Translations under genes and position numbers: made by a program
Part shown: piece after piece, positions 11,946-61,973 of the stretch
Layout of the letters: each line of letters starts with the position of its first letter
Numbering within the stretch: position 1 is the stretch's first letter
Notes under the pieces: model-generated
Told to the model about the DNA's origin: nothing
Seen by the model: only the letters and a program-made list of their open reading frames with translations
Databases searched by the model: none
Sequence record: LR745206.1
DNA length: 64,000 nt
Direction: 5' to 3' (one strand)

Positions 11946-12404
11946 TTATTCTATACCAAGTTTTCTAAGTTTAGCATCTCTTTTCATTGATTCATCTACA
12001 ACCAATTCTATATCCTTTTTCGATATCCACTTTTTTTGCATAAATTGTATTATACCACTTTTGTTTTTTGGATCCCTTCCAACTTTATCATTTGGTGTAA
12101 AGTCAACAGCATTAACTTTAACCTTATCAACAGAAACATCAATTATTTCTACTTCATATGTTACTTTAAAGCTTTCATTGCTCTCAGTGTAAATGAGTGA
12201 ATAATCAGGAATGATGGCTCTATCACCAACATCAATTGAAAGAATCTCTTCACTATCATATTTGGTTTTATCCAACTCCACTTTAAGTTTGTTATTCTTA
12301 TTTATTAACAAACAATTATTTGAATACATATGTTTAATTACTGATAAGCTAATAATTAAACCGATAAGTAATAAACCAATTACTATTATATAGAATATTT
12401 CCAT
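11946..12404 (-). CDS. TM hypothetical protein with C-terminal RDxKL tag
   Basis: N-terminal TM; ends RDAKLRKLGIE. Confidence 0.7.
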   Translation of the reverse strand: MEIFYIIVIGLLLIGLIISLSVIKHMYSNNCLLINKNNKLKVELDKTKYDSEEILSIDVGDRAIIPDYSLIYTESNESFKVTYEVEIIDVSVDKVKVNAVDFTPNDKVGRDPKNKSGIIQFMQKKWISKKDIELVVDESMKRDAKLRKLGIE

Positions 12405-12405
12405 T

Positions 12406-12681
12406 TTATACCTCGTAATATAACTCTGAATAAATTGGAGATCTTCTTATAATTTCTCTTATTAGTTCAAGTCCTATATCTTGTAAAGCTATTTTGACAA
12501 CATCATCATCAAAATTCTTTTCTAAAATATCACCACTTGTTAGTTTTTTCATATCAGATTTAGTGATATAAATGTTAGTGCTTCCGTATTGTGAACCACC
12601 CTTTGGCCACTGGTGTGTCAGTGATCCAGATTTACAAAGATTTGTAAATGTTGTTTCTGTTAATAAAATTCTACTTTCCAT
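12406..12681 (-). CDS. hypothetical protein
   Basis: 91-aa ORF. Confidence 0.6.
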   Translation of the reverse strand: MESRILLTETTFTNLCKSGSLTHQWPKGGSQYGSTNIYITKSDMKKLTSGDILEKNFDDDVVKIALQDIGLELIREIIRRSPIYSELYYEV

Positions 12682-12691
12682 ATTGTATTTA

Positions 12692-12904
12692 TCATTTTTT
12701 TGAATTAAGTTTAGATCCTAAACAGATATTATCTTCATTAATTTCTGATTCATATCCCCAAACATCTTTGGTTATCATGTGACAGGCATGTTCACCATCT
12801 TTAATCTTATTAATACTATCTAATGATTTGACATAATTCGGCCAATTTTTACTATGTTGGTCGTTTTTAGTCCATGGACATTCACTACAAGGCTTTCTAC
12901 ACAT
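12692..12904 (-). CDS. Cys-rich small protein, likely metal-binding
   Basis: CRKPCSECPW...HACH...C. Confidence 0.65.
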   Translation of the reverse strand: MCRKPCSECPWTKNDQHSKNWPNYVKSLDSINKIKDGEHACHMITKDVWGYESEINEDNICLGSKLNSKK

Positions 12905-12924
12905 GAGTTTGGTTACTTTTTATA

Positions 12925-12932
12925 CAAAAATA
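12925..12932 (-). promoter_or_regulatory. Bacteroidota-type -7 promoter element
   Basis: TATTTTTG (TAnnTTTG) 20 nt upstream of ATG 12904. Confidence 0.55.
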
Positions 12933-13046
12933 GTCAAAATAATTGTATTTTCTAAACTTTTTTCTAAACTTTTTAAAACATAAGCCAGGCTTATGTATGT
13001 AAGAAACATACGTTAAAAGACGTAATAAAAAAAATACATAGACGGC

Positions 13047-13319
13047 ATGAATAAAGCAGAACTAGTTAGCTCAATTTCTGAAAAAACAGGTCTTACGAAA
13101 ACTAAATCAAATGAAGTGATTGATGCTCTTTTATCTTCGATTAAAGAGTCACTAAGTGATGGCGAAAAGGTTACTTTGGTTGGTTTCGGTACATTTACAA
13201 CATCTAAAAGAGATGCACGTAAAGGTAGAAATCCTAAGACTGGCGAATCTATTGACATCCCCGCTAAAACGGTAGCCCGTTTCAAAGCTGGTTCGGACTT
13301 GTCAAAGAGTGTTAATTAA
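13047..13319 (+). CDS. hup: HU family DNA-binding protein
   Basis: MNKAELV...VTLVGFGTF...RKGRNPKTGE...F signature. Confidence 0.95.
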   Translation: MNKAELVSSISEKTGLTKTKSNEVIDALLSSIKESLSDGEKVTLVGFGTFTTSKRDARKGRNPKTGESIDIPAKTVARFKAGSDLSKSVN

Positions 13320-13338
13320 TTTTAACAGACAGAAATTT

Positions 13339-13371
13339 AAAAACCCACTAATATAATTAGTGGGTTTTTTT
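13339..13371. terminator. bidirectional intrinsic terminator
   Basis: AAAAACCCACTAAT-ATA-ATTAGTGGGTTTTT perfect stem. Confidence 0.85.
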
Positions 13372-13550: not shown

Positions 13551-14561
13551 TTAAAAAATATCATATAAGTTATCTTTCCACTCTGGTACAAAATCTAATA
13601 CTTCTTCATCCAATATCCTATCTATCTTTAAATCTCGATTCGTAGCAACTCCAGGCTTAACCTCCAACCAACCCCTGCTGTTCAATTTACCAATTCTGTG
13701 AATTATTCTATTATATGAATACATTTTTGCAGTATTATTAACTATAAAGATATTATTCTTACAATGAGATACAGCATTTTCATAATTTTCATATAGTTTA
13801 TGACCATCATAAGATAGACCACAGCAACTAATATCAACATTTCTGATTAAATCAATGAATGATTTTTTATATATCTCTTCTTTTAAATCTGATTTTATAT
13901 GACCGATTGCTGGTCTTATTAATTGAACTATCTTATCTCCCTTAACCCAACTATGTGGTTCATTTATGACTTTTATATCATTATAAATACTAGATAAGTC
14001 TTTTGGTGTTAGTGATTCGATATATTTGTATTCGTTTTGTGATAGTATATTTTCCACATAATCAATTGATCCAGAACCTAATATGATATCCACATCATGT
14101 ATTTCTCTATCTGAAATAGCATCTCTTACAGCACCTCCAAATATCCTAACGAGTGAGTTTATCGGAAATAATTCATCAGAATTAAACCCAAGGTATTTAT
14201 TAATTTCTTTTCTAACCTTATCACCAAGAGTTACACCAAGACTTCTTATCTTTTGATTTCTACTCTCTGATACATAATCATCTATTGTTATGCTTATTGA
14301 TTTTGATATTTCCTCAACCTTACCAGGCACAAATGATGATTTAATTTTCATATTATACACAACCCATATACTAGGATCAGAAAATTCACCATCTATTAAT
14401 TCTTTACTAGGTTTGTATTTAATAGTGATTATATCAAATGGTATTAGTTTGGAGCAAAAGATCCGTCTATTAAATTCTGGAGCAGTTACGGACTCTATAT
14501 ATTTATGCACTATTCTTTTTATAACATCAGGATCTATTGATGAGTCTTCTAATTTTAACAT
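13551..14561 (-). CDS. nucleotidyltransferase, CCA-adding/poly(A) polymerase head-domain like
   Basis: IFGGAVRDAI..REIHDVDII motif; N-terminal ~110-aa extension ending RNQKIRSLGV. Confidence 0.75.
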   Translation of the reverse strand: MLKLEDSSIDPDVIKRIVHKYIESVTAPEFNRRIFCSKLIPFDIITIKYKPSKELIDGEFSDPSIWVVYNMKIKSSFVPGKVEEISKSISITIDDYVSESRNQKIRSLGVTLGDKVRKEINKYLGFNSDELFPINSLVRIFGGAVRDAISDREIHDVDIILGSGSIDYVENILSQNEYKYIESLTPKDLSSIYNDIKVINEPHSWVKGDKIVQLIRPAIGHIKSDLKEEIYKKSFIDLIRNVDISCCGLSYDGHKLYENYENAVSHCKNNIFIVNNTAKMYSYNRIIHRIGKLNSRGWLEVKPGVATNRDLKIDRILDEEVLDFVPEWKDNLYDIF

Positions 14562-14802
14562 TTCTAATTTCTATTTTAAAGTGGTGTTCTATACTACCAG
14601 GGATTTTCCTATAAAGTATTTTTAATAGTTCATCATCTGATAGAGATTTTCTATCTACTTTATAGTTTATGGTTCTCTTTTTCCTTTTAGTTAGAATATT
14701 TATATGTAAAGTGTCATTAGTTAGTTTATAACTTATGATTTCTTTCGATTCTACTTTACGATTTAGAATTTCTTTTATCTTGGTTTTACTAAAAAGGTTC
14801 AT
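14527..14802 (-). CDS. basic hypothetical protein with C-terminal tag
   Basis: ends RNVKIRRLINRS. Confidence 0.6.
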   Translation of the reverse strand: MNLFSKTKIKEILNRKVESKEIISYKLTNDTLHINILTKRKKRTINYKVDRKSLSDDELLKILYRKIPGSIEHHFKIEIRNVKIRRLINRS

Positions 14803-20810: not shown

Positions 20811-23800
20811 TTATTTAAGTACTGTTACGTGACCTCTGACTTGTTTTCTAACATTATTGAATGTTGTTACATCTACTGTCCAGACATAAACATCATTTTT
20901 AACAATACTTCCTTTATAAGTACCATCCCAACCAACTTCCGAATTATATGATTCGAATAATATCTCACCCCATCTATCAAAGATAGTTAAGTGATATTTT
21001 TGTGGATCGTGACCAGAAACAATCGGTAAAAACACATTGTTAAATGCGTCACCGTCTGGTGTAAAAGCATTTGGTACGAATAGGAAGAACTCTTGATTTA
21101 TAACTACCATTCCATATGCAGTATCACTACAACCAAAATCATTTATAACTATAAGTTCTATTTGATAATGTCCAGTATCTTGATAAGAATGTGAATCGTG
21201 GAAATTATTTGAGATATCACCATCACCAAATGACCATTGGAATTGATTACCACCAATAGAATTATTAATGAAATTAATAGTATTATTAGTAATAGTTCCT
21301 TCATTAGGATCCCAAGTAAACTGAGCTATTGGTTCAGGATAGACTTGAAAAGCATTTGTTATAGTAGTATCCATTGTACAACCATCAAGTGATGTCATTG
21401 ATAATGTAACACTATAATACCCAGAGTTAAAATAAATATCACTGATTGATCCACAACCTGTATAATTTAATAGTGTTCCAGGTCCACTTACTATCCAATT
21501 ACATCCAGTACCAGCAGCATTGTTTGTCATTGTTATATCTAATGGCGAGCAACCATTAGGTGTAAATGTTATATCCATTGGTGGTACATTATAAATATTA
21601 ACTGTTGTGGTTATGATTGAATCACAACCGTTAGACGTTAATAAATTACTTATATACACAACATTACTATTGATATTAGTTTGAGTTGTGCCATCCGGGA
21701 ATGTAAAGTTTAGACCAGGACATTGGTTATAAGACTCTGTTAGATTATAAACAGGATTTATTGATATATTCTCAGTTACTAAGCTATCACAACCATCAAC
21801 CGATGTTAATGTACTTACATAACTTGTTGGTGCTGTAATATTAGTTTGTGAAGAACCATCAGCAAATGTATAATTATCACCACTACATATTGTTATATTT
21901 GTTGTTGATGTGTATGAAGCGAATACAGAAACATTTGTTGTTATGATTGAATCACAACCAACATTAGTTAATAAATTACTAACATGAACTGTTGGTGCAA
22001 CTATACCAGCTTGTACAAATCCATCTGGGTATGTATAAGAAGAACCACTACAAACACTAACATTTTCTACTATATTATAAACAGGATCTATTGAGACATT
22101 TGTCGTTATGATTGAATCACAACCATTTGTTGTTAATAAATTACTTACTTGTGTTACCGGAACTATAATACCAGATTGTATTGATCCATCTGGGAATGTA
22201 TAATTATCACCACTACAAACACTAACATTCTGAATAACATTATAAATAGGGTTTAATGAAACATTTGTTGTTACTATTGAATCACATCCATTTGTTGTTA
22301 ATAAATTACTTACTTGTGTTACTGGAGCCACAATACCAGATTGTATTGATCCATCTGGGAATGTATAATTATCACCTTCACATATAGTAACATTTTGAGT
22401 TATGTTATAAACAGGATTAACGGAAATATTTGTTGTTACTATTGAATCACATCCATTTGAAGCCGCTCCGGTAAGTGTACTTACTTGTGAAGTTGGTACA
22501 ATAACATTTGGATTAACACTTCCATCTGGGAATGTGTACGAATCACCACTACAAACAACAGTATTAACCACTGATGTTGGATTTGGTAATAGTGAAACAT
22601 TTGTTGTAACTATTGAATCACAACCAGCAACAGATGCACCAACAAGGGTACTTACTTGTGAAACTGGTCCACTTATAACTTGTGTTGATCCATCTGGGAA
22701 TGTAACAGTTGTTCCGTTACAAACAGATATATTCTGAGTAGATGTTACAGATGGTACAATAGAAACATTTGTTGTAATTATAGAGTCGCAACCATTTGAA
22801 GCAGCACCAACAAGTGTGCTAATTTGTGAAGTTGCTGCTACCACTACCTGACTTGATCCATCTGGAAAAACAACAGTTGTTCCACTACAAACAGATATGT
22901 TTTGTGTAGATGTTGGATTAGGTAGTAAAGTAACATTTGTTGTGATAACTGAATCACAACCATTAAATGCGCCACCAACAAGTGTACTCACTTGTGTAAC
23001 TGCACCACCTATAACTTGTGTTGATCCATCTGGGAATGTAACAGTACTACCGTTACAAGCTGATATGTTTTGTGTAGATGTTGATGGTAATGGTGTATAA
23101 TCAACATAAACTGAATCAGTTGTACTACATCCACCACCAGTAACAGTAACATAATACCAAGAACTTGTTGTTGGACAAGCCGTTTGTGTGCTATCATTAA
23201 TAGGTGTTAAAAAAGGACCTACCCAGTTCCAAACATAAACTGGTGGAGCTGTTCCGCAGTTTGCGGTTGTTGTGAATACATTTCCAGTAGCTGGATTTGG
23301 ACCACCATTGAATATAGGAATAGCAAGTGGATTATATAAAGTATAAGTATTCTCTCCTTCCCAAGAACCGGATGTATAGTTCAAGGTGAATGTTTGTCCA
23401 TCTTGAACACAAAAAGTTATTATACTACCACTACCAGCGGCAGAGAATGGTCCTAATGTTGGACCAGCAGTTACATTCACTGTTAATGAACCACCATTCC
23501 AACCATCACCGAATGAATCCTGCATATCTAATGTATAACAACAAGAATCAGGTGGTATAGATGAAAGACCAGCATCTAATTGTGTACAACCACCACAAGT
23601 AGTTATTGTTGGTGGGGTAGCTGTAACATTAACAATAGGGAATAAAACATTAACTGTTACACTTGAGTAACAGGTATCATTTATACCATTTGTATATAAT
23701 ACATTGTATGTTGTAGTTGATGTTGGACAAACTGTTCCACCTGATGCTGGATTTGGGGATCCTGGTAAATGCGACCAATCATAATAATATCCACAATCAT

Positions 23801-24428
23801 TTGCTAAAATAGTAACATTATCAATACCCCAGTGATCATTAAGATTACTTGACGTAGCTGTTTGACTCCATTGAAACATAGTACTTGGTGACCAAGCACC
23901 AGGCGGTAAAGTAAAACAATAATTATTCCAAGTTGTCATAATAGGATCAAATCCTGTTCCTGGATTGAAATAGTTTATTGTTATCCAAGTCACACCACCA
24001 TTAATTGAATATTGAAAGTAAATACCTTCTGTTGGTAAATCCGGACCCTCACAAGGAGAAGCACCGCCTTGTTGAGCCATTCTAAAATCAAAACAAACTT
24101 GACCACCACAACTCATATCGAATGCGTTTGTGGTTAATATTCTCGGTGCTGGTGAAGCTGAACCCATCCACATATAAGTACCACCTGGTCCCGGACCACA
24201 TGGGTTAGTATATGTTGCTGCTGTAGTTGAAGACCAACCAGGTCCAGCAACTCCAGTATTAAAATCATTATTCATAACAAGTGTGCCTTGAATACCAATA
24301 GCATTCAAATCAGCACATTGACCACAAACAACTTGATTCACTGATGCTGTTGTGGTTACTGAGCATTGTGATATCACATTTGATGTGAATCCAAGTAATG
24401 TAATAAATAGAAATATTAGTTTTTTCAT
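20811..24428 (-). CDS. T9SS type-B sorting domain (gliding motility-associated CTD) surface protein with reelin-like, tandem-repeat and PKD domains
   Basis: Sec signal MKKLIFLFITLLGF; QYSINGGVTW/DHWGIDNV; PKD motifs AQFTWDP and QWSFGDG; C-terminal VPNAFTPDGD..NNVF...IFDRWG...WDGTYKG. Confidence 0.9.
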   Translation of the reverse strand: MKKLIFLFITLLGFTSNVISQCSVTTTASVNQVVCGQCADLNAIGIQGTLVMNNDFNTGVAGPGWSSTTAATYTNPCGPGPGGTYMWMGSASPAPRILTTNAFDMSCGGQVCFDFRMAQQGGASPCEGPDLPTEGIYFQYSINGGVTWITINYFNPGTGFDPIMTTWNNYCFTLPPGAWSPSTMFQWSQTATSSNLNDHWGIDNVTILANDCGYYYDWSHLPGSPNPASGGTVCPTSTTTYNVLYTNGINDTCYSSVTVNVLFPIVNVTATPPTITTCGGCTQLDAGLSSIPPDSCCYTLDMQDSFGDGWNGGSLTVNVTAGPTLGPFSAAGSGSIITFCVQDGQTFTLNYTSGSWEGENTYTLYNPLAIPIFNGGPNPATGNVFTTTANCGTAPPVYVWNWVGPFLTPINDSTQTACPTTSSWYYVTVTGGGCSTTDSVYVDYTPLPSTSTQNISACNGSTVTFPDGSTQVIGGAVTQVSTLVGGAFNGCDSVITTNVTLLPNPTSTQNISVCSGTTVVFPDGSSQVVVAATSQISTLVGAASNGCDSIITTNVSIVPSVTSTQNISVCNGTTVTFPDGSTQVISGPVSQVSTLVGASVAGCDSIVTTNVSLLPNPTSVVNTVVCSGDSYTFPDGSVNPNVIVPTSQVSTLTGAASNGCDSIVTTNISVNPVYNITQNVTICEGDNYTFPDGSIQSGIVAPVTQVSNLLTTNGCDSIVTTNVSLNPIYNVIQNVSVCSGDNYTFPDGSIQSGIIVPVTQVSNLLTTNGCDSIITTNVSIDPVYNIVENVSVCSGSSYTYPDGFVQAGIVAPTVHVSNLLTNVGCDSIITTNVSVFASYTSTTNITICSGDNYTFADGSSQTNITAPTSYVSTLTSVDGCDSLVTENISINPVYNLTESYNQCPGLNFTFPDGTTQTNINSNVVYISNLLTSNGCDSIITTTVNIYNVPPMDITFTPNGCSPLDITMTNNAAGTGCNWIVSGPGTLLNYTGCGSISDIYFNSGYYSVTLSMTSLDGCTMDTTITNAFQVYPEPIAQFTWDPNEGTITNNTINFINNSIGGNQFQWSFGDGDISNNFHDSHSYQDTGHYQIELIVINDFGCSDTAYGMVVINQEFFLFVPNAFTPDGDAFNNVFLPIVSGHDPQKYHLTIFDRWGEILFESYNSEVGWDGTYKGSIVKNDVYVWTVDVTTFNNVRKQVRGHVTVLK
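21590..23085 (-). repeat. nine tandem ~55-57-aa repeats (CxGxxxTFPDGS...GCDSIxTTN)
   Basis: nine units read directly in the translation; boundaries approximate. Confidence 0.85.
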
Positions 24429-24866: not shown

Positions 24867-25169
24867 TTATATAATACCGATTTTTTGCAATTTTTCGTCT
24901 CTTTCCCATTGTTTTTCAGTTACAAACCAACCTACCCAAGACTCCGAGACACCAACTTGACCAAACCACCAATTAAGATTTAAATCATCTTTTATACAAA
25001 TATCATCTTCAAATCCATCTCTAGTATGCACGATTTCATATCGTTTACCGTAAGTTAGATCTTCCATATCTTCCAATATACAGACAAGAATATTACCTTT
25101 TTTAAGTCTCACTATTATACATTTTAAAGACGAGTATGGATTTAAATGGTTGTTAGATACCCAAATCAT
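24867..25169 (-). CDS. hypothetical protein with C-terminal tag
   Basis: ends RDEKLQKIGII; true start uncertain. Confidence 0.65.
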   Translation of the reverse strand: MIWVSNNHLNPYSSLKCIIVRLKKGNILVCILEDMEDLTYGKRYEIVHTRDGFEDDICIKDDLNLNWWFGQVGVSESWVGWFVTEKQWERDEKLQKIGII

Positions 25170-25449
25170 TTATTTTTTTACCTCTGGATTCTCTGATATA
25201 CCAATCATAAACAACTTGGTAATAATCATCATGATCAAAATAAACATAACTTGTGCCACTAGATTTATTATCAATAAATAAATGTTCTCCTGTTATTAAT
25301 AAGCATTTAACATAGTTGGTTGGATTACCTCTTGGTACATCCTTTACCTCCAAATGCGTTATTAGTGTGTAAGTTTGATCATTAAATGAATTTTCCTTTA
25401 TTAGATTAATTAGGTAATCACTTTCTAACTTTGATATTTCTATTCTCAT
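25153..25449 (-). CDS. hypothetical protein with C-terminal tag
   Basis: ends RGKKINDLGI. Confidence 0.65.
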   Translation of the reverse strand: MRIEISKLESDYLINLIKENSFNDQTYTLITHLEVKDVPRGNPTNYVKCLLITGEHLFIDNKSSGTSYVYFDHDDYYQVVYDWYIRESRGKKINDLGI

Positions 25450-29061: not shown

Positions 29062-29082
29062 TTAGTTCATTATCAAGTATTT

Positions 29083-47390: not shown

Positions 47391-47551
47391 GTGATAAGAA
47401 TAAGATAGTATTAAAAGGTATCTTCCAAACATTCGAGACACAAAATAAGAATCCATCAAGACCATACAATTGGAAAGATGATATGTATATGAAGAACATG
47501 ATTAGGAAACAAATTAGAATGGGTAAGATTAAGATTATATTTAAGATATGA
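47387..47551 (+). CDS. 54-aa protein resembling a prohead protease N-terminal fragment plus tag (not in ORF track)
   Basis: IVLKGIFQTFETQNKNPSRPY; ends IRMGKIKIIFKI. Confidence 0.45.
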   Translation: MSDKNKIVLKGIFQTFETQNKNPSRPYNWKDDMYMKNMIRKQIRMGKIKIIFKI

Positions 47552-49922: not shown

Positions 49923-50318
49923 TTATCCTTCTTCAAGTATATTAGTTATTAGATCTTCTCTGAATAATGATTTAAGTTCTTGTGCTACATCATCTTCTGT
50001 TCTTAATAACCTTAATAACTTCTTATTGATTTTATTTACTAGTTCTTCATATAAACTATATTCGATTGTCTCATTTTTAACTGGTATATTAAATACATCC
50101 CCATTATTTAAGCATTTATCACTTTTGTATGCTAGTCTAATAGAAGCATCTGGATCAGCATCTTCTCTCATAACAGAATTTAGTATAATAACAACATTGT
50201 TTATAATTACTTCTACTCCCCAAGAATGTACGTGTTTATCACCAGATATTATGTTAAATTTAACATTATCTAATTCAATAGCTTTACGTGTAGCATCTAT
50301 AAGTTCTTGTTTAGTCAT
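49923..50318 (-). CDS. hypothetical protein with tag variant
   Basis: REDLITNILEEG. Confidence 0.65.
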   Translation of the reverse strand: MTKQELIDATRKAIELDNVKFNIISGDKHVHSWGVEVIINNVVIILNSVMREDADPDASIRLAYKSDKCLNNGDVFNIPVKNETIEYSLYEELVNKINKKLLRLLRTEDDVAQELKSLFREDLITNILEEG

Positions 50319-50455
50319 TTACCTTTAAATATGTTATTAATTTTATTCTTTCTAATGAGGTTAACAGTTTTTTTCAAAATTATATAGTCTTCAAATCTCT
50401 TAATTACTTTCATTTCTATCCCACTTCTCAAATCCTTTCTCACATAATTCATCAT
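50315..50455 (-). CDS. 46-aa protein with tag variant (not in ORF track)
   Basis: ends IRKNKINNIFKGK; ATGA-coupled to next gene; start uncertain. Confidence 0.4.
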   Translation of the reverse strand: MMNYVRKDLRSGIEMKVIKRFEDYIILKKTVNLIRKNKINNIFKGK

Positions 50456-52160: not shown

Positions 52161-52736
52161 TTAAAATATTAAAAGTATTAACTTTCTAACATCACCCATT
52201 GATTTTATTCTTTCAATTAAATCATCATCAGTTTCGGTTAATGTATAATTACTATCACTGCTTTTATTACCAAGTAAAGAAACCTTTGTGTGGTTAACAG
52301 TAGTTCTGGATGAATATATTCTTGGTAAAGGTATGATATGTTCAACTTCAATACCTCTTATGGATAAACCTTTTTCTTTCAAATAATCACTGACAAATCT
52401 AAGATGCTCATAAACATCAATAATACTAAATGTTTGGAATGATGTTGATGGTTTCTTTTTAAGTAATCTAACATCTGTTTTTATACTAACTATAAACTTC
52501 TTACCACCCAAATCAACATCATCAGTTGAAAATAGTTGAAATATATCAAGCCTGTTTGGATGATTATTTAATACATCTCTACTACAATAATTACTCAAAT
52601 GACCCAACATTGTTCTGGTGACAACACTATTAACACGTACATCATATTTAACCTCATCGGATATATCAGCAAAAAGATATTTAATATCAAGCGTATTCAT
52701 AGATTCAAATAACTTATATGGTCTTAGGTATATCAT
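52161..52736 (-). CDS. CTS-like N-terminus, DIFxELxDDG family
   Basis: MIYLRPYKLFES; TAATATATAT at 52740-52749. Confidence 0.75.
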   Translation of the reverse strand: MIYLRPYKLFESMNTLDIKYLFADISDEVKYDVRVNSVVTRTMLGHLSNYCSRDVLNNHPNRLDIFQLFSTDDVDLGGKKFIVSIKTDVRLLKKKPSTSFQTFSIIDVYEHLRFVSDYLKEKGLSIRGIEVEHIIPLPRIYSSRTTVNHTKVSLLGNKSSDSNYTLTETDDDLIERIKSMGDVRKLILLIF

Positions 52737-53093: not shown

Positions 53094-53318
53094 ATGAGTA
53101 GGTTTACTTGTACATATTGTGGGACAGATCCTCATGACGAACAGGAAAAACCTGGTATGTGGGGTTATAAGTACACTTTTAAATGTGGTGGATTCTTAGA
53201 TGTAAGTTATAGTGAGGATCATGGTGGTGACTCTGAGGACTTCTATAATATAGATAACTGTGAGTCTTATAAGTTATCTTTATTACGTTCTAATAAGATA
53301 GATAGTTTATTACATTAA
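53094..53318 (+). CDS. Cys-containing small protein with tag
   Basis: CTYC...C...C; ends RSNKIDSLLH. Confidence 0.65.
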   Translation: MSRFTCTYCGTDPHDEQEKPGMWGYKYTFKCGGFLDVSYSEDHGGDSEDFYNIDNCESYKLSLLRSNKIDSLLH

Positions 53319-53539: not shown

Positions 53540-53911
53540 TTATTTTAATATCATATTTAACTTAGCTTCTCTTGTATGCTCTTTTTCATTATTACATAAG
53601 TCTCTAGCTTCTTCATGCATATCTTCCAAGAACTTTAATAACTCTTTGTGTTTAATTATCTTGAGATTACTATCAATGAATCCTAAAGTTCTTATTGAAC
53701 GTACTAATGGTAGATAACCCGCTGAGTTTTCTAATATACCATAACTTGAATCATCAAAGAATAAATAATCATTATTAATATCTTCCTTTAATGTTTTTAT
53801 AGCTTCATAGTTATCATTTAAGAAGAAATCAATTATATTGAGTATAGGTGTGTAATTACCATCAGGTAACTCATACTCTACTACTAATTCATATCTTCCT
53901 TTTAACTTCAT
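53540..53911 (-). CDS. hypothetical protein with C-terminal tag
   Basis: REAKLNMILK. Confidence 0.65.
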   Translation of the reverse strand: MKLKGRYELVVEYELPDGNYTPILNIIDFFLNDNYEAIKTLKEDINNDYLFFDDSSYGILENSAGYLPLVRSIRTLGFIDSNLKIIKHKELLKFLEDMHEEARDLCNNEKEHTREAKLNMILK

Positions 53912-53946: not shown

Positions 53947-54318
53947 TTATTTAATTATTTGATTCAATTTACAATCTCTCTCAAGACTCTTTATACTACT
54001 CTCGAATGTAACATCAAACATATTATCTAATTCCTTAGCATTTGGTATTGAATCATTATTCTTATAGTTGGAGATACTACTCCATGATTGTCCAGTATAT
54101 CCTTCTGGTATAGTGTTATTTATGAACTGTTCAGCAGTTATATTAATAGAATTACTTGAGTTGTCCTTATGATACATTTGTAATAAAGACCAACTACCTT
54201 CTAACCAATCTCTCCATGAACAAGATCTAATGAATATTCTATTATTAAGTGATACAAAGTATGTGGTTGAGTGTGGTCTACCCTCAAAGTAACTAGACTG
54301 TCCTTTTATTATTTCCAT
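53947..54318 (-). CDS. hypothetical protein with C-terminal tag
   Basis: RDCKLNQIIK. Confidence 0.65.
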   Translation of the reverse strand: MEIIKGQSSYFEGRPHSTTYFVSLNNRIFIRSCSWRDWLEGSWSLLQMYHKDNSSNSINITAEQFINNTIPEGYTGQSWSSISNYKNNDSIPNAKELDNMFDVTFESSIKSLERDCKLNQIIK

Positions 54319-54656
54319 TAGATATAGCTTTGTGATGTTACAATATGTTCTACTGTGAATGGTGTTGCAGTCCTTTTATAACAATCGTGTAATATATTGA
54401 TTAAGAAGTAACCACATTCATCATATATCTCTCCACGGTTTGCACCGAATGTACTTCCGAATCCTTGTTGTGTAGAGTGTTTGAATTCTTTACTACCTTG
54501 TGGGTTATTGATAACGAACTCAATTAATTCCTTACAATGTTTAATATCACGAGGATCATATTGATAGCTAGTAAATGTATCTAGTTTATCTAGGTCGTCA
54601 ATGAAGCAATAGGTGCCTCCATCTGGACTTGAGTTTTGAAATAGTATATTTTTCAT
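54318..54656 (-). CDS. hypothetical protein
   Basis: 112-aa ORF. Confidence 0.6.
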   Translation of the reverse strand: MKNILFQNSSPDGGTYCFIDDLDKLDTFTSYQYDPRDIKHCKELIEFVINNPQGSKEFKHSTQQGFGSTFGANRGEIYDECGYFLINILHDCYKRTATPFTVEHIVTSQSYI

Positions 54657-54946
54657 TTAATTACCTCATCAATTTTAGAATCTCTTATATCTGATATAAA
54701 ATATTCTTTTATAATTTTATTACTTCGTGTATGTTTCTCAAGGTATACTTTTAGATTTTGTGTATCTCCCTCCCAATAATCCTCATCTTCATCATATCCA
54801 TAAGGTGTAACTGTATGATCTTCTAATGGTTCATACTTTAACATTTCCTCATATCTACCCTTACACATTACGTTCTGTCGATAGTTACCTACTTGTTTAC
54901 CATCCTTTTCAATTCTGTATTCTACTACGTTTGCACTTGTACTCAT
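54653..54946 (-). CDS. hypothetical protein with C-terminal tag
   Basis: RDSKIDEVIK. Confidence 0.65.
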   Translation of the reverse strand: MSTSANVVEYRIEKDGKQVGNYRQNVMCKGRYEEMLKYEPLEDHTVTPYGYDEDEDYWEGDTQNLKVYLEKHTRSNKIIKEYFISDIRDSKIDEVIK

Positions 54947-55533: not shown

Positions 55534-55821
55534 ATGTATATGACTAAACAAACAATTTATAGAGTATCATTACTTATGTTAAGTACATTCGTATTATGGT
55601 ATATGGTTATATCCTTTATCGAATGGGATATGAGTTGGATTCAACATATAGTAGATGATAAACAAATGAGATATAGTTTCCTTGTTGGATTTATCATAAA
55701 GATATTACTAGACTTTTGGTTATGGTCATATATCAAAGATAAATATTTCCACACATACGTAGATGCTGATAAGAAACTTGAAGAAGAAAATCAAGAGAAA
55801 TTAAGGAAGACTTTTAATTAA
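55534..55821 (+). CDS. two-TM membrane protein
   Basis: two hydrophobic segments, charged C-tail. Confidence 0.65.
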   Translation: MYMTKQTIYRVSLLMLSTFVLWYMVISFIEWDMSWIQHIVDDKQMRYSFLVGFIIKILLDFWLWSYIKDKYFHTYVDADKKLEEENQEKLRKTFN

Positions 55822-56897
55822 GCTCTATAATATCCCACATCACCCATATGTAGATTCTTATATAAGTAATCATATATTCCATTAGCCTCTTCACTAGTCA
55901 TTGTTATATCAAGTGGTCTTATAACAACACTCAATAATACATTCTTCATATTCTCATTCATACCCAATCTCTTACTTACATGTATTGGTAAGTCTGAATA
56001 TAACCACTCACCTTTGATATTTATCTCTTCAATTATATTAGACTCTATAAGTGTTCTTATTCTATCACCTATTTGTTCTATATCAATATCATTGTCAACA
56101 GCAATTGACATATCTCTTATGATTGATGGTTGTGTAGATACCTCAACATAAGGTGATAAATCAGACATCTGCTTTTGTATCCTAGGGTTTTGACTTCTTA
56201 ATATTCTAATATCATTAATACCCTTTCTTAACATAACAGATCTATCTAACCCAATACCCATTGCTAGTCCTGACCAAACATTACTATCTAATCCAGAATC
56301 ATCTAATAACTTTGGTAGTGCTAGTCCACACTCTAATATTTCTAACCAAGTATCATTTACATAAACTTCTACCTCTATACCATCTTTTGTATAGTAGTGT
56401 GATGTTTCATTGTATCTCCATTTAACACCAGGTAATACTACATCAATAACACATTGAACCAAATCTAAAAGGTCTTCTCTATTATAAACTTTATCATTAG
56501 TTATTCTCCATATATCCATTTGATGAGGTTCACCAACATGTGTTTTATCAACAACATCCCTTCTATAAACAATACCAGGACATATCAATAATGTATCTTT
56601 ATTTACAGACTTCAATGCTGGTGGTATAGATGATGTCATTTGTGTTCTAAGTAATGTTGTATCGTTTATCCATCTGGTATACCTTGATGATTTTGTAATG
56701 GTATCTTGTGGGTAATAAAGATTATCATAGTTATTTTTAGAATCAACTATGGGTGAATCCTTAATGATACTTGGTTGTATAGTATATTTACTTTGTAATG
56801 ATTTAATGATTTCATCGGTTATAATACCAATTGCATGATTCTTATCTAATGTTAAGTCAACTACTTGTAATGATTTATTTAATTCTTCTTTATTCAT
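55818..56897 (-). CDS. single-chain PheRS-like ligase (PheS catalytic domain plus FDX-ACB)
   Basis: LLRTQMT, motif 2 YRRDVVDKTH...HQMD, WLEILECG, motif 3 GLAMGIGLDR, C-terminal PSIIRDMS...TMTSEEAN. Confidence 0.8.
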   Translation of the reverse strand: MNKEELNKSLQVVDLTLDKNHAIGIITDEIIKSLQSKYTIQPSIIKDSPIVDSKNNYDNLYYPQDTITKSSRYTRWINDTTLLRTQMTSSIPPALKSVNKDTLLICPGIVYRRDVVDKTHVGEPHQMDIWRITNDKVYNREDLLDLVQCVIDVVLPGVKWRYNETSHYYTKDGIEVEVYVNDTWLEILECGLALPKLLDDSGLDSNVWSGLAMGIGLDRSVMLRKGINDIRILRSQNPRIQKQMSDLSPYVEVSTQPSIIRDMSIAVDNDIDIEQIGDRIRTLIESNIIEEINIKGEWLYSDLPIHVSKRLGMNENMKNVLLSVVIRPLDITMTSEEANGIYDYLYKNLHMGDVGYYRA

Positions 56898-58746: not shown

Positions 58747-59385
58747 TCATTCAGCGTCTTTCATTAGTCTATTGAATTTTTCATCACTCATAAATCTTCT
58801 ATTAGATATTAACCAAGACCTCTCAAATTTATATCTATTATAATAATACTGAATATCAATCCTATCATCTACAATAACCGAATATACAGTTGAATCTTTC
58901 ATACCCAATACATTAATTACTTTATCATGTGCTTCTAGTACAGCCTCTCTCAATTTAGGATTCTTTATAGCTAAAAATTTTTCAGCTTCTTTATTTGTAT
59001 ATCTACCACCTTTTATAGAATAATCTATTATAACAACTGAACACCCAGGGTTTTTTTTATCTTTACTACTATTAAATATAAAGTATGAATAATCCCCTGT
59101 CTCTAATAAACTTAGTCTCTCAGCATCATTATCAGTCATGTTTGATGGGCAATCAGAAACCACAATTGAATCATGTGGTACAGATAAACTTTTACTTCTA
59201 TCAATCATAACATATGGAGTATTAACATTACTTTCGTTATTTAATACTCCTTCATAACCTAGTAAATCTTTTATATCTCTTCTAACCATATTAAAATCAT
59301 CAAATATATCTTGGTAACAATCAATGATAAGTAATATATCATCCTCCTTTGATTCAAACACTTTATATTTCTTTATATGTTTCAT
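58747..59385 (-). CDS. CTS-like N-terminus hypothetical protein
   Basis: MKHIKKYKVFES; TTATATATAC at 59390-59399. Confidence 0.75.
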   Translation of the reverse strand: MKHIKKYKVFESKEDDILLIIDCYQDIFDDFNMVRRDIKDLLGYEGVLNNESNVNTPYVMIDRSKSLSVPHDSIVVSDCPSNMTDNDAERLSLLETGDYSYFIFNSSKDKKNPGCSVVIIDYSIKGGRYTNKEAEKFLAIKNPKLREAVLEAHDKVINVLGMKDSTVYSVIVDDRIDIQYYYNRYKFERSWLISNRRFMSDEKFNRLMKDAE

Positions 59386-59402
59386 ATAGGTATATATAAA
59401 AA

Positions 59403-59433
59403 AAAGGTGGTGAATTATAAACTCACCACCTTT
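59403..59433 (-). terminator. intrinsic terminator after SPFH gene
   Basis: AAAGGTGGTGA/TCACCACCTTT stem with U-tract on the minus strand. Confidence 0.8.
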
Positions 59434-59451
59434 CTCACCTATCTACTTATA

Positions 59452-60912
59452 TTATTTTTTATCTGATTTCTTATCATCTGAATCAGCTAATGGGTTTAAG
59501 TTCTTCAACATACCCAATAAGGCTTTACCCTCGTCAGTTTGTTTCAAAGACTCAAGTAGTCCATTAATTTGTGATCCTCCTTTAGATGATAGAATATCAG
59601 AGAACTTGTTCATACCTGATTCAACATCACCACTGTTAGCAAGAATCTTTAAGTCTGCTGATGCAAGTGCCTTAGCCATTGCTTCTGCTTTCGCAACTTC
59701 AACAACTTGCTCTTTATCCACCGTCTTAACTCTAATAAGGTAATCTTGGTACCCTACGTTCTCACCAATTTCTTTCGCTAACTCTGTTTGAGCAGTTACG
59801 GATGCTAACTGACCAGCTTTCTCAGCTTCAGCCTCAGACATACCTTTAGCAGCGATTACTTTCGCTTCAGCCTCACCAACGGCTTGAACACCCTCAGCTT
59901 CTTTTTTCTTAGCGGCTAAGTGTGCATCAGCATCAGTTTCAACCTTAAACTTATCAGCTTCTGCTCCAATAGCAACAGTTCTCTTACGTTTCTCAGCGTC
60001 AATGATTTCTCTCTCTTTATCAATCTCAGCTTGTTTAATTTGAGCTACTTTGATAACTTCCATTTGTTGTAGTTTAGTTGCTCTTTCAGCTTGAGCAATA
60101 TCAGAGATAGAGTTTTGTTCTGCGATACCCGATGCTTTCATAGAGTTCGCTCTAGCAATACCAATAGCTCTTTCAGAGTCAGCTTGTGCTTCACCAGCTT
60201 CCCTTTGTGTTTCAGATCTAGTAACAGCAATGTTCTTCTCTGCTTCAAGTTCTGCTTGTTCAGCCTTACGGTTGTTAAGTGCAACTTCTGTACGAGACTC
60301 CATATCAATTGCTGACATACGTTTCGCCATAATCTGGTGAATTACTTTTGAGCCACCAGCATCTCTTACATCCATTAACTCGATGTTTTTAATTGAAGCT
60401 ACACCCCAATTAGATAAGTCAGCGTTAACTGCCTCAGTGAATTGTAAACCAAAGATAGAACGCTCCTCCATAATCTCTTCTAACTTAGACTTGGCTAGGA
60501 TTGAACGAACGGCACCTTGAACTACATTCTCAAGTTGTTTCTTTAACTCTTGGTATGATTCCACTTTTGCTGCTGCAATGTTTGTATCTGAAATGTGGAA
60601 GAATGCTTTGACATCAACGACAAATGGAACTCTGTCTTTATCATAAGCTGAATATTCTGATAAGTCAATATCAAAATTGGATACTGGTAACTCCCGAACA
60701 TCAACACCAATAACTGGTATCCATTTTGGGAATTCGTAATAAACATTTGATGTTTTACCGACACCATATGAAACGGTTTGTTTGCCTCTTTGGACAATGT
60801 GAACCACGTTAGTAGGTACAATCCTACGTAGTGATAAAATGTAAAAAAATATGATAGCTCCTACTAATGAGGGAATACCATACAGTAATAATGAAAATAA
60901 TGTTTCTGACAT
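59452..60912 (-). CDS. SPFH/flotillin-family membrane protein
   Basis: N-terminal TM, RRIVPTNVVHIV, DKDRVPFVVD, GAVRSILAK, long A/E-rich coiled coil. Confidence 0.9.
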   Translation of the reverse strand: MSETLFSLLLYGIPSLVGAIIFFYILSLRRIVPTNVVHIVQRGKQTVSYGVGKTSNVYYEFPKWIPVIGVDVRELPVSNFDIDLSEYSAYDKDRVPFVVDVKAFFHISDTNIAAAKVESYQELKKQLENVVQGAVRSILAKSKLEEIMEERSIFGLQFTEAVNADLSNWGVASIKNIELMDVRDAGGSKVIHQIMAKRMSAIDMESRTEVALNNRKAEQAELEAEKNIAVTRSETQREAGEAQADSERAIGIARANSMKASGIAEQNSISDIAQAERATKLQQMEVIKVAQIKQAEIDKEREIIDAEKRKRTVAIGAEADKFKVETDADAHLAAKKKEAEGVQAVGEAEAKVIAAKGMSEAEAEKAGQLASVTAQTELAKEIGENVGYQDYLIRVKTVDKEQVVEVAKAEAMAKALASADLKILANSGDVESGMNKFSDILSSKGGSQINGLLESLKQTDEGKALLGMLKNLNPLADSDDKKSDKK

Positions 60913-60991
60913 AATTTTTTTTTTAATAATTAATAAATAGATATAGGTAGTTTTTTTTATACAGCTACCACCCTTTGGCTGTTTACTTTTA

Positions 60992-60999
60992 CAAAGATA
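60992..60999 (-). promoter_or_regulatory. Bacteroidota-type -7 element
   Basis: TATCTTTG ~80 nt upstream of the SPFH ATG. Confidence 0.5.
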
Positions 61000-61005
61000 G
61001 GAATA

Positions 61006-61194
61006 TTATTCAATATCTTTTAAAAAATCTTCTTTTTTTCTTCTTTCTAATCTTCTTTTAAGAACTTTCATACGGGATCTAGCTTTTCTAGCATTACCAT
61101 ATCTAGCACCACGTTCTTGTTGCCATGTTGCATCTCCCCTATCTTCATTGAGTCCTTTAGTAACTCTGGTGTCTATTGATAATTTACTTTTCAT
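61006..61194 (-). CDS. very basic small protein
   Basis: 62 aa, R/K-rich. Confidence 0.55.
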   Translation of the reverse strand: MKSKLSIDTRVTKGLNEDRGDATWQQERGARYGNARKARSRMKVLKRRLERRKKEDFLKDIE

Positions 61195-61197
61195 ATT

Positions 61198-61581
61198 TTA
61201 TTGTAGTATATTACTTAATACTCTATCTCTCATTAATAACTTTGATTCATTCACTAAGCATTTAAATACCTTTATATGAGATTCTGTTCCCCAATGACTT
61301 TGTTTTCCTATTGGTAGTTTTTTATCTTCTATGAAGTAATCATCAATTATTGTCTCGATATTTATATAATCTTGAAAATTAAAAAATAACATAGACATAG
61401 TTGATAGTTTTCCATTTATAACATCACGATAAGTACCAATACCATTATAATAAGATATTCTATCTACTATATCAGTAGTAAATGGGTATTTATGACCACA
61501 CATATTACTTATATCACAACAAATACCTATAATCTCACCAGATACTTTCTTTTTTAACCACCTTTTAGCTACTTCTTCCAT
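61198..61581 (-). CDS. hypothetical protein with tag variant
   Basis: RDRVLSNILQ. Confidence 0.65.
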   Translation of the reverse strand: MEEVAKRWLKKKVSGEIIGICCDISNMCGHKYPFTTDIVDRISYYNGIGTYRDVINGKLSTMSMLFFNFQDYINIETIIDDYFIEDKKLPIGKQSHWGTESHIKVFKCLVNESKLLMRDRVLSNILQ

Positions 61582-61973
61582 TATACTAACTCACTTAATT
61601 TTTTATCTCTTCTTAGTCTATTAATCTCATTCTTAAACTTCTCAAAGTTCTCTGGGTGTCTATCAAAATATTTTAATTCTTCATATTCCCATTGTAGATT
61701 CTTCATAGCTTGATGTAACTCAGCACCTATATTATCTTTAAGTATATCATATATCTTCTCAATAGCTTTATCTATACCAACTTCATCCATAGTAACACAT
61801 TCATGTCTTATACTAAATCCATTACTGTTAATTCTAATCTCAGATGCACCTCCATAATATAGAGATTCGCAGTTATCTGGTGTTAATTCTTCTTTTGGTA
61901 TATAGGTACAAGTATATGAACCACCATTCTTACTTGTGAATTCTATAATACTTCTAATATCTTCTCTTGTCAT
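61581..61973 (-). CDS. hypothetical protein with C-terminal tag
   Basis: RDKKLSELV. Confidence 0.65.
   Translation of the reverse strand: MTREDIRSIIEFTSKNGGSYTCTYIPKEELTPDNCESLYYGGASEIRINSNGFSIRHECVTMDEVGIDKAIEKIYDILKDNIGAELHQAMKNLQWEYEELKYFDRHPENFEKFKNEINRLRRDKKLSELV

Follow-up and report, generated by a model that had tools for sequence, protein, structure and literature searches.

A shared C-terminal tag, predicted to be helical, on small, otherwise unrelated proteins of a Bacteroidota-infecting megaphage

The window analysed here, a stretch of 64,000 nucleotides corresponding to positions 558001-622000 of LR745206.1 (634,780 bp), belongs to an uncultured T4-related megaphage that infects Bacteroidota, and contains 122 greedily chosen ORFs. 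We found that 28 of these ORFs encode proteins ending in the consensus [K/I/L]-[S/Q]-x-[I/L]-R-[D/E/N]-x-K-[I/L]-x-x-[I/L]-[L/G/I/F]-x-COOH, hereafter the tag, and that their genes lie on both strands. In the left part of the window, the carriers on the minus strand are 11946-12404 (152 aa, with an N-terminal TM segment; tag ESMKRDAKLRKLGIE at nt 11952-11993), 14527-14802 (91 aa; KIEIRNVKIRRLINRS at nt 14536-14577), 24867-25169 (100 aa; KQWERDEKLQKIGII at nt 24873-24914), 25153-25449 (98 aa; IRESRGKKINDLGI at nt 25156-25197) and 25446-25769 (107 aa; IPILREIKLNLIGI at nt 25449-25490), the last of which ends in GGT ATA TGA and overlaps the next ATG. Two further carriers are on the plus strand, namely 26122-26556 (144 aa; KAMLRDNKLNSILEDGQKD at nt 26497-26538), whose body (residues 1-123) is homologous to the tag-less RB43 ORF185c, and 26540-26767 (75 aa; LLVIRDKKISKILDELT at nt 26714-26755).

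A second group begins with the minus-strand ORF 38652-39203 (183 aa), a borderline carrier with a weak tag, GDRLRHLKIEFVL (score 11), together with an N-terminal CTS-like sequence, MKYLKSFNESL. It is followed on the plus strand by 39241-39891 (216 aa; KTHIREDKLIELGI at nt 39847-39888), whose body is a palm-and-fingers fragment of a family-B DNA polymerase with motifs A, B, C and KKRY; by two tiny carriers with an RK variant of the tag, 39888-40046 (52 aa; YAFNRKDKIKRIFRKK) and 40645-40758 (37 aa; LALIRKNKIRKIFKLDEEKVPF); and by 40736-40981 (81 aa; KELIRDFKIKQLGI, ending in GGT ATA TGA) and 40978-41391 (137 aa; KEIMRDVKLMNILESSMK). In the next plus-strand ORF, 41388-41597 (69 aa), the motif KRALREKKLQSVLK lies 24 residues from the C-terminus and is therefore not terminal. 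On the minus strand, 42099-42299 (66 aa) has the best-scoring tag in the window, KQYIRDNKLEKLGIR, whereas 42420-42836 (138 aa) carries KSYERAVKLSKIFK and 44434-44661 (75 aa) is a weak carrier with KSSLRNKNISILLIS (score 12).

The plus-strand carriers further to the right are 46841-47044 (67 aa; TINIRNNKLSSIGIQ), the tiny 47041-47151 (36 aa; RK-variant tag KHHIRKHKISVIFNIIK), 47148-47390 (80 aa; FEGLRDIKLKQLGI, ending in GGA ATA TGA), 48011-48316 (101 aa; KQLDREDKLKLLGVSI) and 48313-48594 (93 aa; KDKVRDYKLSKLLD). A tiny plus-strand ORF, 47387-47551 (54 aa), has the RK-variant tail IRMGKIKIIFKI, but was displaced in the greedy ORF choice by a minus-strand ORF. On the minus strand, 49923-50318 (131 aa) is a weak carrier, KSLFREDLITNILEEG (score 11), with leucine in place of the lysine at +3, and 50315-50455 is a tiny carrier (46 aa) with the RK-variant tag VNLIRKNKINNIFKGK. 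The remaining carriers are 53094-53318 on the plus strand (74 aa; LSLLRSNKIDSLLH, with arginine encoded by CGT) and, on the minus strand, 53540-53911 (123 aa; KEHTREAKLNMILK), 53947-54318 (123 aa; KSLERDCKLNQIIK), 54653-54946 (97 aa; ISDIRDSKIDEVIK) and 61581-61973 (130 aa; NRLRRDKKLSELV).

The observation on which this study was based, that about 30 unrelated small ORFs in the window share a C-terminal motif, was confirmed and proved stronger than first described. All 20 tails given as examples in the original prediction were found at the ends of the respective ORFs. The strict core, R..K[LIVM]..[LIVM], was located within the last 16 residues in 25 of the 122 ORFs, compared with 0.36 expected from residue shuffles (maximum 3 in 1000); there were only 8 internal hits, so that C-terminal positions are enriched 51.6-fold over internal ones. 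With a position matrix, 28 ORFs scored at least 10, and adding 41388-41597 and 47387-47551 gives the predicted number of about 30. The scale, however, had been underestimated. Of the 1036 ORFs in the whole genome, 126 match the strict core, 157 the matrix and 179 a looser pattern, whereas the matrix null is 0.6 per genome and 16 of 2675 alternative-frame ORFs match; the tag thus marks about 15% of the ORFs of this 635-kb genome. Among the 126 strict hits, the distance from the arginine to the C-terminus peaks sharply at 10 (47 ORFs) and 11 (28 ORFs) residues. In addition, about 20 strong internal or N-terminal copies were found, followed by G/E/K/P-rich linkers, which fits a position-independent docking helix.

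The proteins were also predicted to be unrelated, and this held: once the tail is removed, the 157 carriers fall into 155 components in blastp/phmmer comparisons. The prediction that the codons of the tag vary synonymously held as well, since usage within the tag equals that of the genome (for example, arginine as AGA 0.72, AGG 0.18 and CGN 0.10, against 0.77, 0.12 and 0.11), and no conservation of the flanking DNA was detected. The claim that the tag often ends in GGT ATA TGA was partly right, in that four cases in the window end in G-I-TGA; more generally, the stops of 66% of carriers overlap the next start, against 34% of non-carriers. Mutual exclusivity with proteins bearing the N-terminal MKYLKxYKxFE sequence also held but was only marginally significant, with 0 of 20 strict members being carriers where about 3 would be expected, and with 38652-39203 as the borderline case.

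Comparisons with homologues show that the tag is a module under purifying selection. For example, the protein encoded by 26122-26556 aligns over residues 1-123 with about 70 T4-like phage proteins, and the one examined in detail, RB43 ORF185c, ends where the tag begins; AlphaFold2 places the tag of this carrier in a helix at residues 126-140, although this one confident model cannot show whether the helix is free or packed on its own domain. Similarly, a homologue of 54653-54946 in two IMG/VR loci, L055 and L026, shares the N-terminal 72 aa (55% identity) but has a different, untagged C-terminal part. Of 55 metagenomic homologues found at 51-93% identity, the 27 that were aligned all keep the tail, with L-R invariant, and in the family of the small polymerase fragment HIREDKLI is invariant at 47% identity. 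Homologue pairs comprised 43 tagged-tagged and 267 untagged-untagged pairs, and the 22 discordant pairs were mostly sub-threshold variants.

The tag is restricted to one clade of huge phages, in which it occurs with lineage-specific flavours. It was found in 42 of 173 ORFs of LR756502, in 60 of 339 ORFs of LR756504, where the flavour is RKx[K/I]I[E/N][E/D]L[L/I]-COOH, and in 203 of 811 ORFs in 41 IMG/VR loci, but in only 2 of 223 ORFs of LR756501. Of 12 pattern matches in cellular genomes, 11 have no tag, and the remaining one is a probably mis-binned scaffold. No match to the tag was found in Pfam, PHROG, PDB or the literature, and it is apparently undescribed. None of the recognisable replication, structural or enzymatic proteins of the phage is tagged.

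The interpretation offered in the original prediction, a common docking, localisation or degradation signal for early proteins that binds one host or phage partner, was only partly supported. Our data support a modular C-terminal helix that acts at the protein level on unrelated proteins, is conserved under selection, and is largely separate from the N-terminal CTS-like set. The part concerning early proteins behind host-type promoters received weak support: carriers make up 22% of the genes behind a Bacteroidota-type TAnnTTTG element and 10% of those behind the phage motif AATATATA (p=0.003), but they occur in every promoter class, and the timing of these classes is uncalibrated. The proposed function and single partner remain plausible inferences from sequence, with no partner identified and with docking, localisation and degradation not separable by the present analyses.

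The data may be best explained by a modular alpha-helical short linear motif of roughly 14 residues, often preceded by an S/T-x-x-E N-cap, that has been attached to more than 150 sequence-unrelated proteins, which are mostly small (median about 100 aa), predicted to be cytosolic, of unknown function, and encoded in dense, translationally coupled arrays of accessory genes. Selection at the protein level, modularity, conservation in homologues and restriction to the clade are established by the analyses above, whereas what follows is inferred: that the conserved stripe (positions -4, -1, R0, K+3, I/L+4, I/L+7 and L/G+8) lies on one helical face and is a common handle docking all carriers onto one receptor site, which would give a fast-evolving accessory proteome a shared address for localisation, recruitment or processing. 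We consider this reading about as likely as not (probability roughly 0.5), and a phage-encoded or lineage-specific partner more likely than a universally conserved host protein. However, no partner was found, and more than 150 clients for one site would be unusually many for a stoichiometric hub. Part of the lineage-specific flavour is a charge swap on the non-conserved face (D+1/K+5 becoming K+1/E+5), which could reflect helix stabilisation rather than co-evolution with a receptor. Furthermore, adjacent carriers share tag flavour more often than chance (52 of 76 against 40, p=0.0016), so that common descent by local duplication may explain some of the concerted flavour.

Among the alternatives, a shared C-terminal degron, or a tether to an AAA+ protease or adaptor, seems unlikely but is the strongest; it would make many accessory, possibly early, proteins short-lived so that they are cleared at a set stage of a long infection, and the tiny ORFs of 35-55 aa, which are little more than a tag, could act as competitive modulators, as lambda CIII does for FtsH. 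Phage early regulators such as lambda N, CII, Xis and O are commonly unstable through terminal degrons, and such a role would fit the extreme C-terminal location with its sharp distance to the end, the non-polar ends of many tails (LGI-COOH in the IMG/VR relatives and ELL-COOH in LR756504) and the enrichment behind the host-type -7 element. However, the motif is a capped helix with invariant charged residues and not the unstructured tail typical of ClpX, Lon or FtsH signals, about 40% of the tails in LR745206 end in a charged residue or run 2-7 residues past the motif, N-terminal and internal copies exist, and no protease or adaptor partner was identified. Targeting to the capsid or virion interior, in the manner of encapsulin cargo-loading peptides or the C-terminal coat-binding helix of P22 and herpesvirus scaffolding proteins, so that carriers are packaged and ejected into the next host, is less likely still. 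The tag is a C-terminal helix with basic residues at i and i+3, the capsid is of the HK97/gp23 type, and one carrier (genome positions 207176-207907) is a paralogue of the C-terminal part of the major capsid protein and lies next to the structural module; but the separate N-terminal T4-CTS-like set, MK[Y/H]LKxYKxFE, already fits that role without overlapping the carriers, which are almost absent from the structural region at 140-220 kb and relatively depleted behind the motif preceding the CTS-like genes, and 157 small cargo species seems excessive. Binding to the sliding clamp through a PIP-box-like peptide, or to another replisome hub, which would recruit many small proteins to DNA, is similarly doubtful. 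The spacing (polar+1, I/L+4, I/L+7, L/F/I+8) with basic flanks matches a PIP box, clamp motifs likewise sit mostly at C-termini and sometimes at N-terminal or internal positions, the tag is present on a palm-only family-B polymerase fragment, strong internal copies lie in a DinG/XPD-like and a UvsW-like helicase, and the phage has a T4-like clamp loader. On the other hand, canonical clamp clients lack the tag: the thumb-bearing PolB piece ends in ...SVVMDIFGGFK, resembling the tail of RB43 gp43 (...SLNTLFGDDW), and the gp55-, rnh-, gp32- and UvsX-like proteins are untagged. In addition, the aromatic pair of a PIP box is mostly absent, the clamp gene itself was not found, and more than 150 clamp clients would be without precedent.

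Self-association of the tags into dimers, bundles or a condensate-like network, homo- or hetero-oligomeric, is also improbable and has no direct evidence; a conserved i, i+3/4, i+7/8 stripe is typical of helix-helix packing, the adjacent R0 and D/E+1 could form inter-helix salt bridges, the flavours are lineage-wide and concerted, and tag-only mini-ORFs could cap such assemblies, but an invariant Arg and a frequent Lys are unusual in coiled-coil cores and the helix is only about four turns long. A nucleic-acid-level or translational function, such as an A/U-rich initiation region for the overlapping downstream gene or a nascent-peptide effect promoting termination-reinitiation in a host without Shine-Dalgarno pairing, is very unlikely. 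It would account for the frequent stop-start overlaps, the sharply peaked distance to the stop codon and a slight excess of A/T-ending codons at some tag positions (TTA 0.70 against 0.52, ATA 0.69 against 0.53), but Arg codons include CGT, CGC and AGG at genome frequencies, substitutions across homologues are conservative at the amino-acid level (I/L/V, D/E/N), about 20% of carriers are the last gene of a same-strand run and others are followed by gaps, internal and N-terminal copies exist, and the flanking DNA is not conserved. Least likely is a membrane-targeting amphipathic helix of the MinD/FtsA type, as might be suggested by a short terminal helix with Lys, Arg and Leu/Ile and a mean net charge of +1.5: the hydrophobic moment is not elevated (0.22, against 0.25 for random 14-mers from the same proteins), the basic residues lie on the same face as the hydrophobic ones, an acidic residue is conserved at +1, and proteins with TM segments are depleted among carriers (9 of 157 against 71 of 630).

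LR745206.1, which contains the window exactly at positions 558001-622000, with 100% identity over the two stretches searched, is an uncultured phage genome of 634,780 bp. It is one of the Bacteroidota-associated 'Mahaphage' genomes longer than 634 kb, sampled from the Japanese subsurface, and is a sister of LR756502. The phage is T4-related, since phmmer searches with RB43 proteins revealed homologues of gp43, gp44, gp32, rnh, gp55, gp46/47, gp41, UvsX and gp61, although not the clamp gene, and Pfam revealed a Gp23-type major capsid protein. The tails listed in the original prediction were each found at the end of an ORF, and the observation of a shared C-terminal tag therefore held. The strict core R..K[LIVM]..[LIVM] lay within the last 16 residues of 25 of 122 window ORFs, whereas residue shuffles gave 0.36 (maximum 3 in 1000), and C-terminal positions were enriched 51.6-fold over internal ones. 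A position matrix covering residues -4 to +9 identified 28 carriers in the window and 157 among the 1036 ORFs of the genome, against a shuffled null of 0.6 per genome, with 16 of 2675 alternative-frame ORFs also matching; a chance or compositional artefact was thus rejected. The consensus is [K/I/L]-[S/Q]-x-[I/L]-R-[D/E/N]-x-K-[I/L]-[N/K/D]-x-[I/L]-[L/G/I/F]-[D/K/I/N], of which KQYIRDNKLEKLGIR is an example, and the protein usually ends 10 or 11 residues after the Arg. Carriers are small (median 101 aa against 137 aa overall) and are concentrated in arrays of small genes near both ends of the genome map, with only two present in the 80 kb between 140 and 220 kb, where the major capsid gene lies.

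We found that the signal acts at the protein level. Synonymous codon usage at the conserved positions equalled genome-wide usage, including CGT and CGC for Arg and five Leu codons, and alignment of eight tails with their flanks showed no DNA conservation outside the tag codons, ruling out a DNA repeat or an attC-like or PeSL-like cassette element, for which conserved nucleotides or inverted repeats at gene 3' ends, independent of coding, would be expected. The tag is also modular. With tails removed, the 157 carriers formed 155 blastp/phmmer components, and their bodies include a fold shared with a T4-like phage protein family, a PolB palm and a fragment like the major capsid protein, so that a single diverged paralogous family was rejected. 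For example, carrier 26122-26556 is homologous over residues 1-123 to about 70 proteins of T4-like phages, and the one that we read, RB43 ORF185c, ends ...GGLLAFGIIAK at exactly the point where the megaphage protein continues with AMLRDNKLNSILEDGQKD. Similarly, carrier 54653-54946 shares its N-terminal 72 residues with an IMG/VR protein that has a different, untagged C-terminal half.

The tag is under purifying selection. Of the 55 metagenomic homologues of 26122-26556 (51-93% identity), the 27 that were aligned all retain the tail, with L-R invariant and the hydrophobic positions +4, +7 and +8 conserved, although K+3 is not; in the family of 39241-39891, HIREDKLI is invariant at 47% overall identity. 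Among homologue pairs between LR745206 and the other loci, tag status was concordant in 310 of 332, and most of the discordant pairs were sub-threshold tag variants. AlphaFold2 (mean pLDDT 82) predicted the tag of 26122-26556 as helix 126-140, directly after the last strand of the domain, and a Foldseek search of this model against the PDB returned no match at E<=0.001. On a helical wheel, positions -4, -1, R0, K+3, +4, +7 and +8 fall on one face, whereas positions +1 and +5 lie on the other.

With a looser pattern that does not require K or D, C-terminal hits numbered 179 of 1036 ORFs in LR745206, 42 of 173 in LR756502 and 60 of 339 in LR756504, the last with a distinct flavour, RKx[K/I]I[E/N][E/D]L[L/I]-COOH, that ends 9 residues after R. 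In contrast, LR756501 had only 2 of 223, with a C-terminal-to-internal rate ratio of 1.4, indicating that the tag is absent there and making this genome a natural negative control of similar composition; LR756503 is likewise tag-negative. One degenerate DNA pattern scanned over IMG/VR returned 41 loci in which 203 of 811 ORFs are tagged, mostly R[D/E]xKLxxLGI-COOH. The same pattern gave 12 matches over 596 Gb of bacterial and archaeal genomes, 11 of which have no tagged ORF; the remaining one, a 70,341-bp scaffold at 22% GC (JALOAD010000013.1) binned into a MAG of 'Candidatus Muiribacterium halophilum', has 7 of 20 ORFs tagged and is most likely a phage contig mis-binned into a bacterial MAG, or possibly a prophage. 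The tag is therefore a hallmark of one clade of huge phages and not a host feature.

None of the 20 carriers scanned has a Pfam family, and none of the Pfam or PHROG matches covers the tail; only phrog_6726 and phrog_22676, both of unknown function, match two of the bodies. A profile of 25 window tails gave no hits at E<=1e-3 among 1.84 billion protein representatives, the motif being too short for a database of that size, and none at E<=10 among PDB sequences. The recognisable window proteins, comprising two Dam-type and one Dcm-type methyltransferase, HU, a PheRS-alpha-like protein, SPFH, SLT, an AAA ATPase, a HAD-family protein and a protein with a type IX secretion (T9SS) C-terminal domain, are all untagged, as are all the T4-like core proteins. 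Proteins with TM segments are under-represented among carriers (9 of 157 against 71 of 630).

A few carriers can be recognised. The 216-aa product of 39241-39891 (+) consists only of the palm and fingers of a family-B DNA polymerase, with motifs A, B and C and KKRY (DFNSLYP, KvtvNSyWA, YIDADM, which is YIDTDS in a homologue, and KKRYAY); it has no exonuclease or thumb domain and ends in the tag. The best PDB hits of its profile are almost all family-B polymerases (best E = 0.0027), whereas an AlphaFold2 model built from a 3-sequence alignment had a pLDDT of 42 and was unusable. The T4-like replicative PolB itself is split into two genes about 100 kb apart, at genome positions 232803-234344 and 130568-131992 (- strand), one carrying the exonuclease domain and motif A and the other carrying motif C, KKKY and the thumb and ending ...MDIFGGFK. 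In addition, three tiny ORFs of 52-79 aa, at genome positions 83154-83393, 255010-255237 (-) and 265897-266055, consist of a short PolB motif A or motif B fragment (DFASLYPSTQR, KMVNNSYYGF, KISINSYYG) followed by the RK-variant tag (RKxKIxxIF/W, then K-[I/L]-[D/E]-N-P), and may represent gene debris, decoys or captured fragments. The body of a 243-aa carrier at genome positions 207176-207907 is 27% identical over 187 aa to the C-terminal part of the Gp23-like major capsid protein (200752-202434), which lies nearby. Strong internal copies of the motif lie in larger proteins, including a 336-aa protein at window positions 13551-14561 (-), which has a weak nucleotidyltransferase head-domain match and two copies at residues 100 and 308, and, on segments L005 and L003 of the LR745206 record, a DinG/XPD-like helicase (L005:35077-36744) with a copy at residue 245 and a UvsW-like helicase (L003:20830-22440) with one at residue 200.

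The data may be best explained by a docking or targeting helix, that is, one handle recognised by one receptor. This reading rests on the modularity of the tag, a conserved one-sided stripe that mixes Arg/Lys with Leu/Ile, its occurrence at termini with occasional N-terminal or internal copies followed by linkers, its retention across divergent homologues and its lineage-wide flavours. Our analyses show the protein-level signal, its modularity, its conservation and its restriction to one clade, whereas docking and the existence of a single, as yet unidentified receptor are inferred from sequence, and any tag-dependent binding or proteolysis is hypothetical. The original prediction, that the tag is a docking, localisation or degradation signal of early proteins, was therefore only partly supported. 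The argument from lineage-wide flavours is weakened by two observations: part of the LR756504 flavour is a charge swap at +1/+5 on the non-conserved face, and neighbouring carriers share tag flavour more often than chance (52 of 76 against 40, p = 0.0016), so that local duplication followed by rapid divergence of the bodies may contribute to the concerted flavours. With respect to timing, carriers make up 22% of genes behind a Bacteroidota-type TAnnTTTG element and 10% behind the phage motif AATATATA (p = 0.003), but the phage motif also precedes replication genes and the major capsid gene has neither motif; 'early' thus remains an inference. Both sequence classes are enriched in intergenic regions of the whole genome (in the window, for example, upstream of 5415 and 25983), with [A/T]AATATATA preceding 105 gene runs, mostly 0-30 nt before the start codon, and TAnnTTTG, the Bacteroidota -7 type, preceding 48 runs.

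Among the alternatives, a degron would fit the terminal position, the non-polar LGI-COOH and ELL-COOH ends that dominate in relatives, and the tag-only mini-ORFs, but fits less well a capped, predicted helix with charged ends and extensions; for an ssrA-like or ClpX-type degron, an unstructured tail ending in non-polar residues with a free carboxylate would be expected, whereas in LR745206 position +9 is D, K or N in about half of the tails and 40% extend beyond +10. The degrons and tethering tails ssrA, MuA RRKKAI and the SspB XB tail are likewise short signals at the extreme C-terminus, recognised by one machine and transferable between proteins, whereas the tag has invariant internal Arg and Lys and also occurs internally. 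Clamp binding was considered because of the PolB fragment and was then downgraded. As in the PIP box and other sliding-clamp-binding motifs (T4 gp43, gp33 and gp55 tails; bacterial QL[S/D]LF), in which many clients use one short, mostly C-terminal motif for a single hub pocket, the residues of the tag partly fit a polar-x-x-h-x-x-h-h spacing with basic flanks (D/E/N at +1, I/L at +4, I/L at +7 and L/G/I/F at +8). However, the aromatic pair is mostly absent, an aromatic residue at +8 occurring in only about 20 of 157 carriers, and the clients are orphan proteins of unknown function; moreover, the thumb-bearing PolB piece ends ...SVVMDIFGGFK, resembling the tail of RB43 gp43 (...SLNTLFGDDW), and the other expected clamp clients are also untagged, the gp55-, rnh-, gp32- and UvsX-like proteins having no tag.

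Capsid targeting is disfavoured because a second shared signal already resembles the T4 capsid targeting sequence (CTS), which is likewise a phage-encoded peptide address shared by unrelated proteins but is N-terminal and is removed at an L/I-x-E protease site. Specifically, a different set of larger proteins (median 188 aa) begins with M-K-[Y/H]-[L/I]-K-x-[Y/F]-K-x-F-E-[S/A], resembling the CTS plus an L/I-x-E prohead-protease site, with 20 strict cases in the genome and 12 of 173 in LR756502, none of which carries the C-terminal tag. In the window this set is found at 16556, 18667, 19766, 20290, 49640, 51545, 57761 and 58321 (+ strand) and at 27175-27660, 27638-28609, 34352-38206, 38245-38655, 38652-39203, 52161-52736 and 58747-59385 (- strand), and it is associated with the upstream motif AATATATA, showing the reverse of the carrier pattern (1% behind TAnnTTTG against 13%, p = 4e-5). 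A membrane anchor of the MinD/FtsA type was rejected on physico-chemical grounds, since the hydrophobic moment is 0.22 against 0.25 for random 14-mers, Arg and Lys lie on the hydrophobic face and an acid is conserved at +1. The codon data and the presence of tags at the ends of gene runs argue against an RNA-level or translational role, although carriers are unusually often coupled to the next gene (66% against 34%).

Of other known address signals, the encapsulation peptides of bacterial microcompartments and the cargo-loading peptides of encapsulins share with the tag a short, usually terminal helix or peptide that can sit at either end and addresses otherwise unrelated proteins to one receptor surface, as would fit a predicted helix that is terminal in 157 unrelated ORFs. 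In this phage, however, the hydrophobic moment is not elevated, the clients are far more numerous (more than 150, about 15% of the proteome), and the system belongs to a lytic-type megaphage; no sequence match was found, the comparison being limited to the tail profile against the PDB, and no shell genes were identified, although without a dedicated scan for BMC-H or encapsulin genes. The poxvirus ankyrin/PRANC (F-box-like) proteins are also viral accessory proteins with diverse N-terminal parts and a conserved C-terminal adaptor that links them to one cellular machine, but PRANC is a folded domain of about 50 aa on paralogous ankyrin proteins in eukaryotic viruses, whereas here a 14-residue helix sits on unrelated bodies in a phage. 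Although the tag resembles these terminal address peptides, the CTS, clamp-binding motifs and degrons in concept, it is not a member of any of these by the features that could be tested. We found nothing equivalent in Pfam, PHROGs, PDB sequences or the literature examined, in which searches on Mahaphages, conserved C-terminal motifs, capsid targeting sequences and degrons, and huge-phage papers including the source paper of the Mahaphage genomes, revealed no mention of such a motif. Its scale, 15-25% of ORFs across a phage clade, is to our knowledge unprecedented.

A bolder possibility, which we hold only tentatively and consider less likely than not, is that a clade of T4-related megaphages uses a proteome-wide 'postcode', in which a single 14-residue C-terminal helix would direct 15-25% of all gene products, a fast-evolving cloud of orphan accessory proteins, to one phage-specified receptor, which could be a compartment or scaffold, a processing machine or a protease. 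In this view, new genes would become functional simply by acquiring the tag, a form of viral proteome organisation and gene birth not described for any phage; unrelated or newly arisen ORFs, and even fragments of the phage's own polymerase and capsid genes, may be plugged into a common pathway by the addition of one helix, suggesting how such genomes grow. Because most genes of huge phages are small and of unknown function, a shared, transferable address on about one in six of them gives a single experimental handle on more than 150 proteins at once, and finding the receptor would reveal where or when this whole class acts. The motif is also a cheap sequence marker for this phage clade in metagenomes, having already flagged the probably mis-binned 'bacterial' scaffold, and could serve as a portable tag for Bacteroidota hosts.

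Two non-coding gaps in the window, at 28930-29399 and 30381-30616 (470 and 236 nt), are unusually long for a genome that is otherwise 95% coding, and neither they nor the rest of the window contain a tRNA gene or an Rfam match. The two Dam-type and one Dcm-type DNA methyltransferases, the HU protein, the PheRS-alpha-like protein, which has an FDX-ACB domain, and the SPFH/Band-7 protein are encoded at window positions 7953-8810, 32523-33248, 33383-34291, 13047-13319, 55818-56897 and 59452-60912. The 1205-aa protein encoded at 20811-24428 (-) has a signal peptide, a Reelin-subrepeat-B-like domain, a PKD domain and a CHU_C type IX secretion C-terminal domain; it is, by these domains, a phage-encoded T9SS substrate, which fits a Bacteroidota host.
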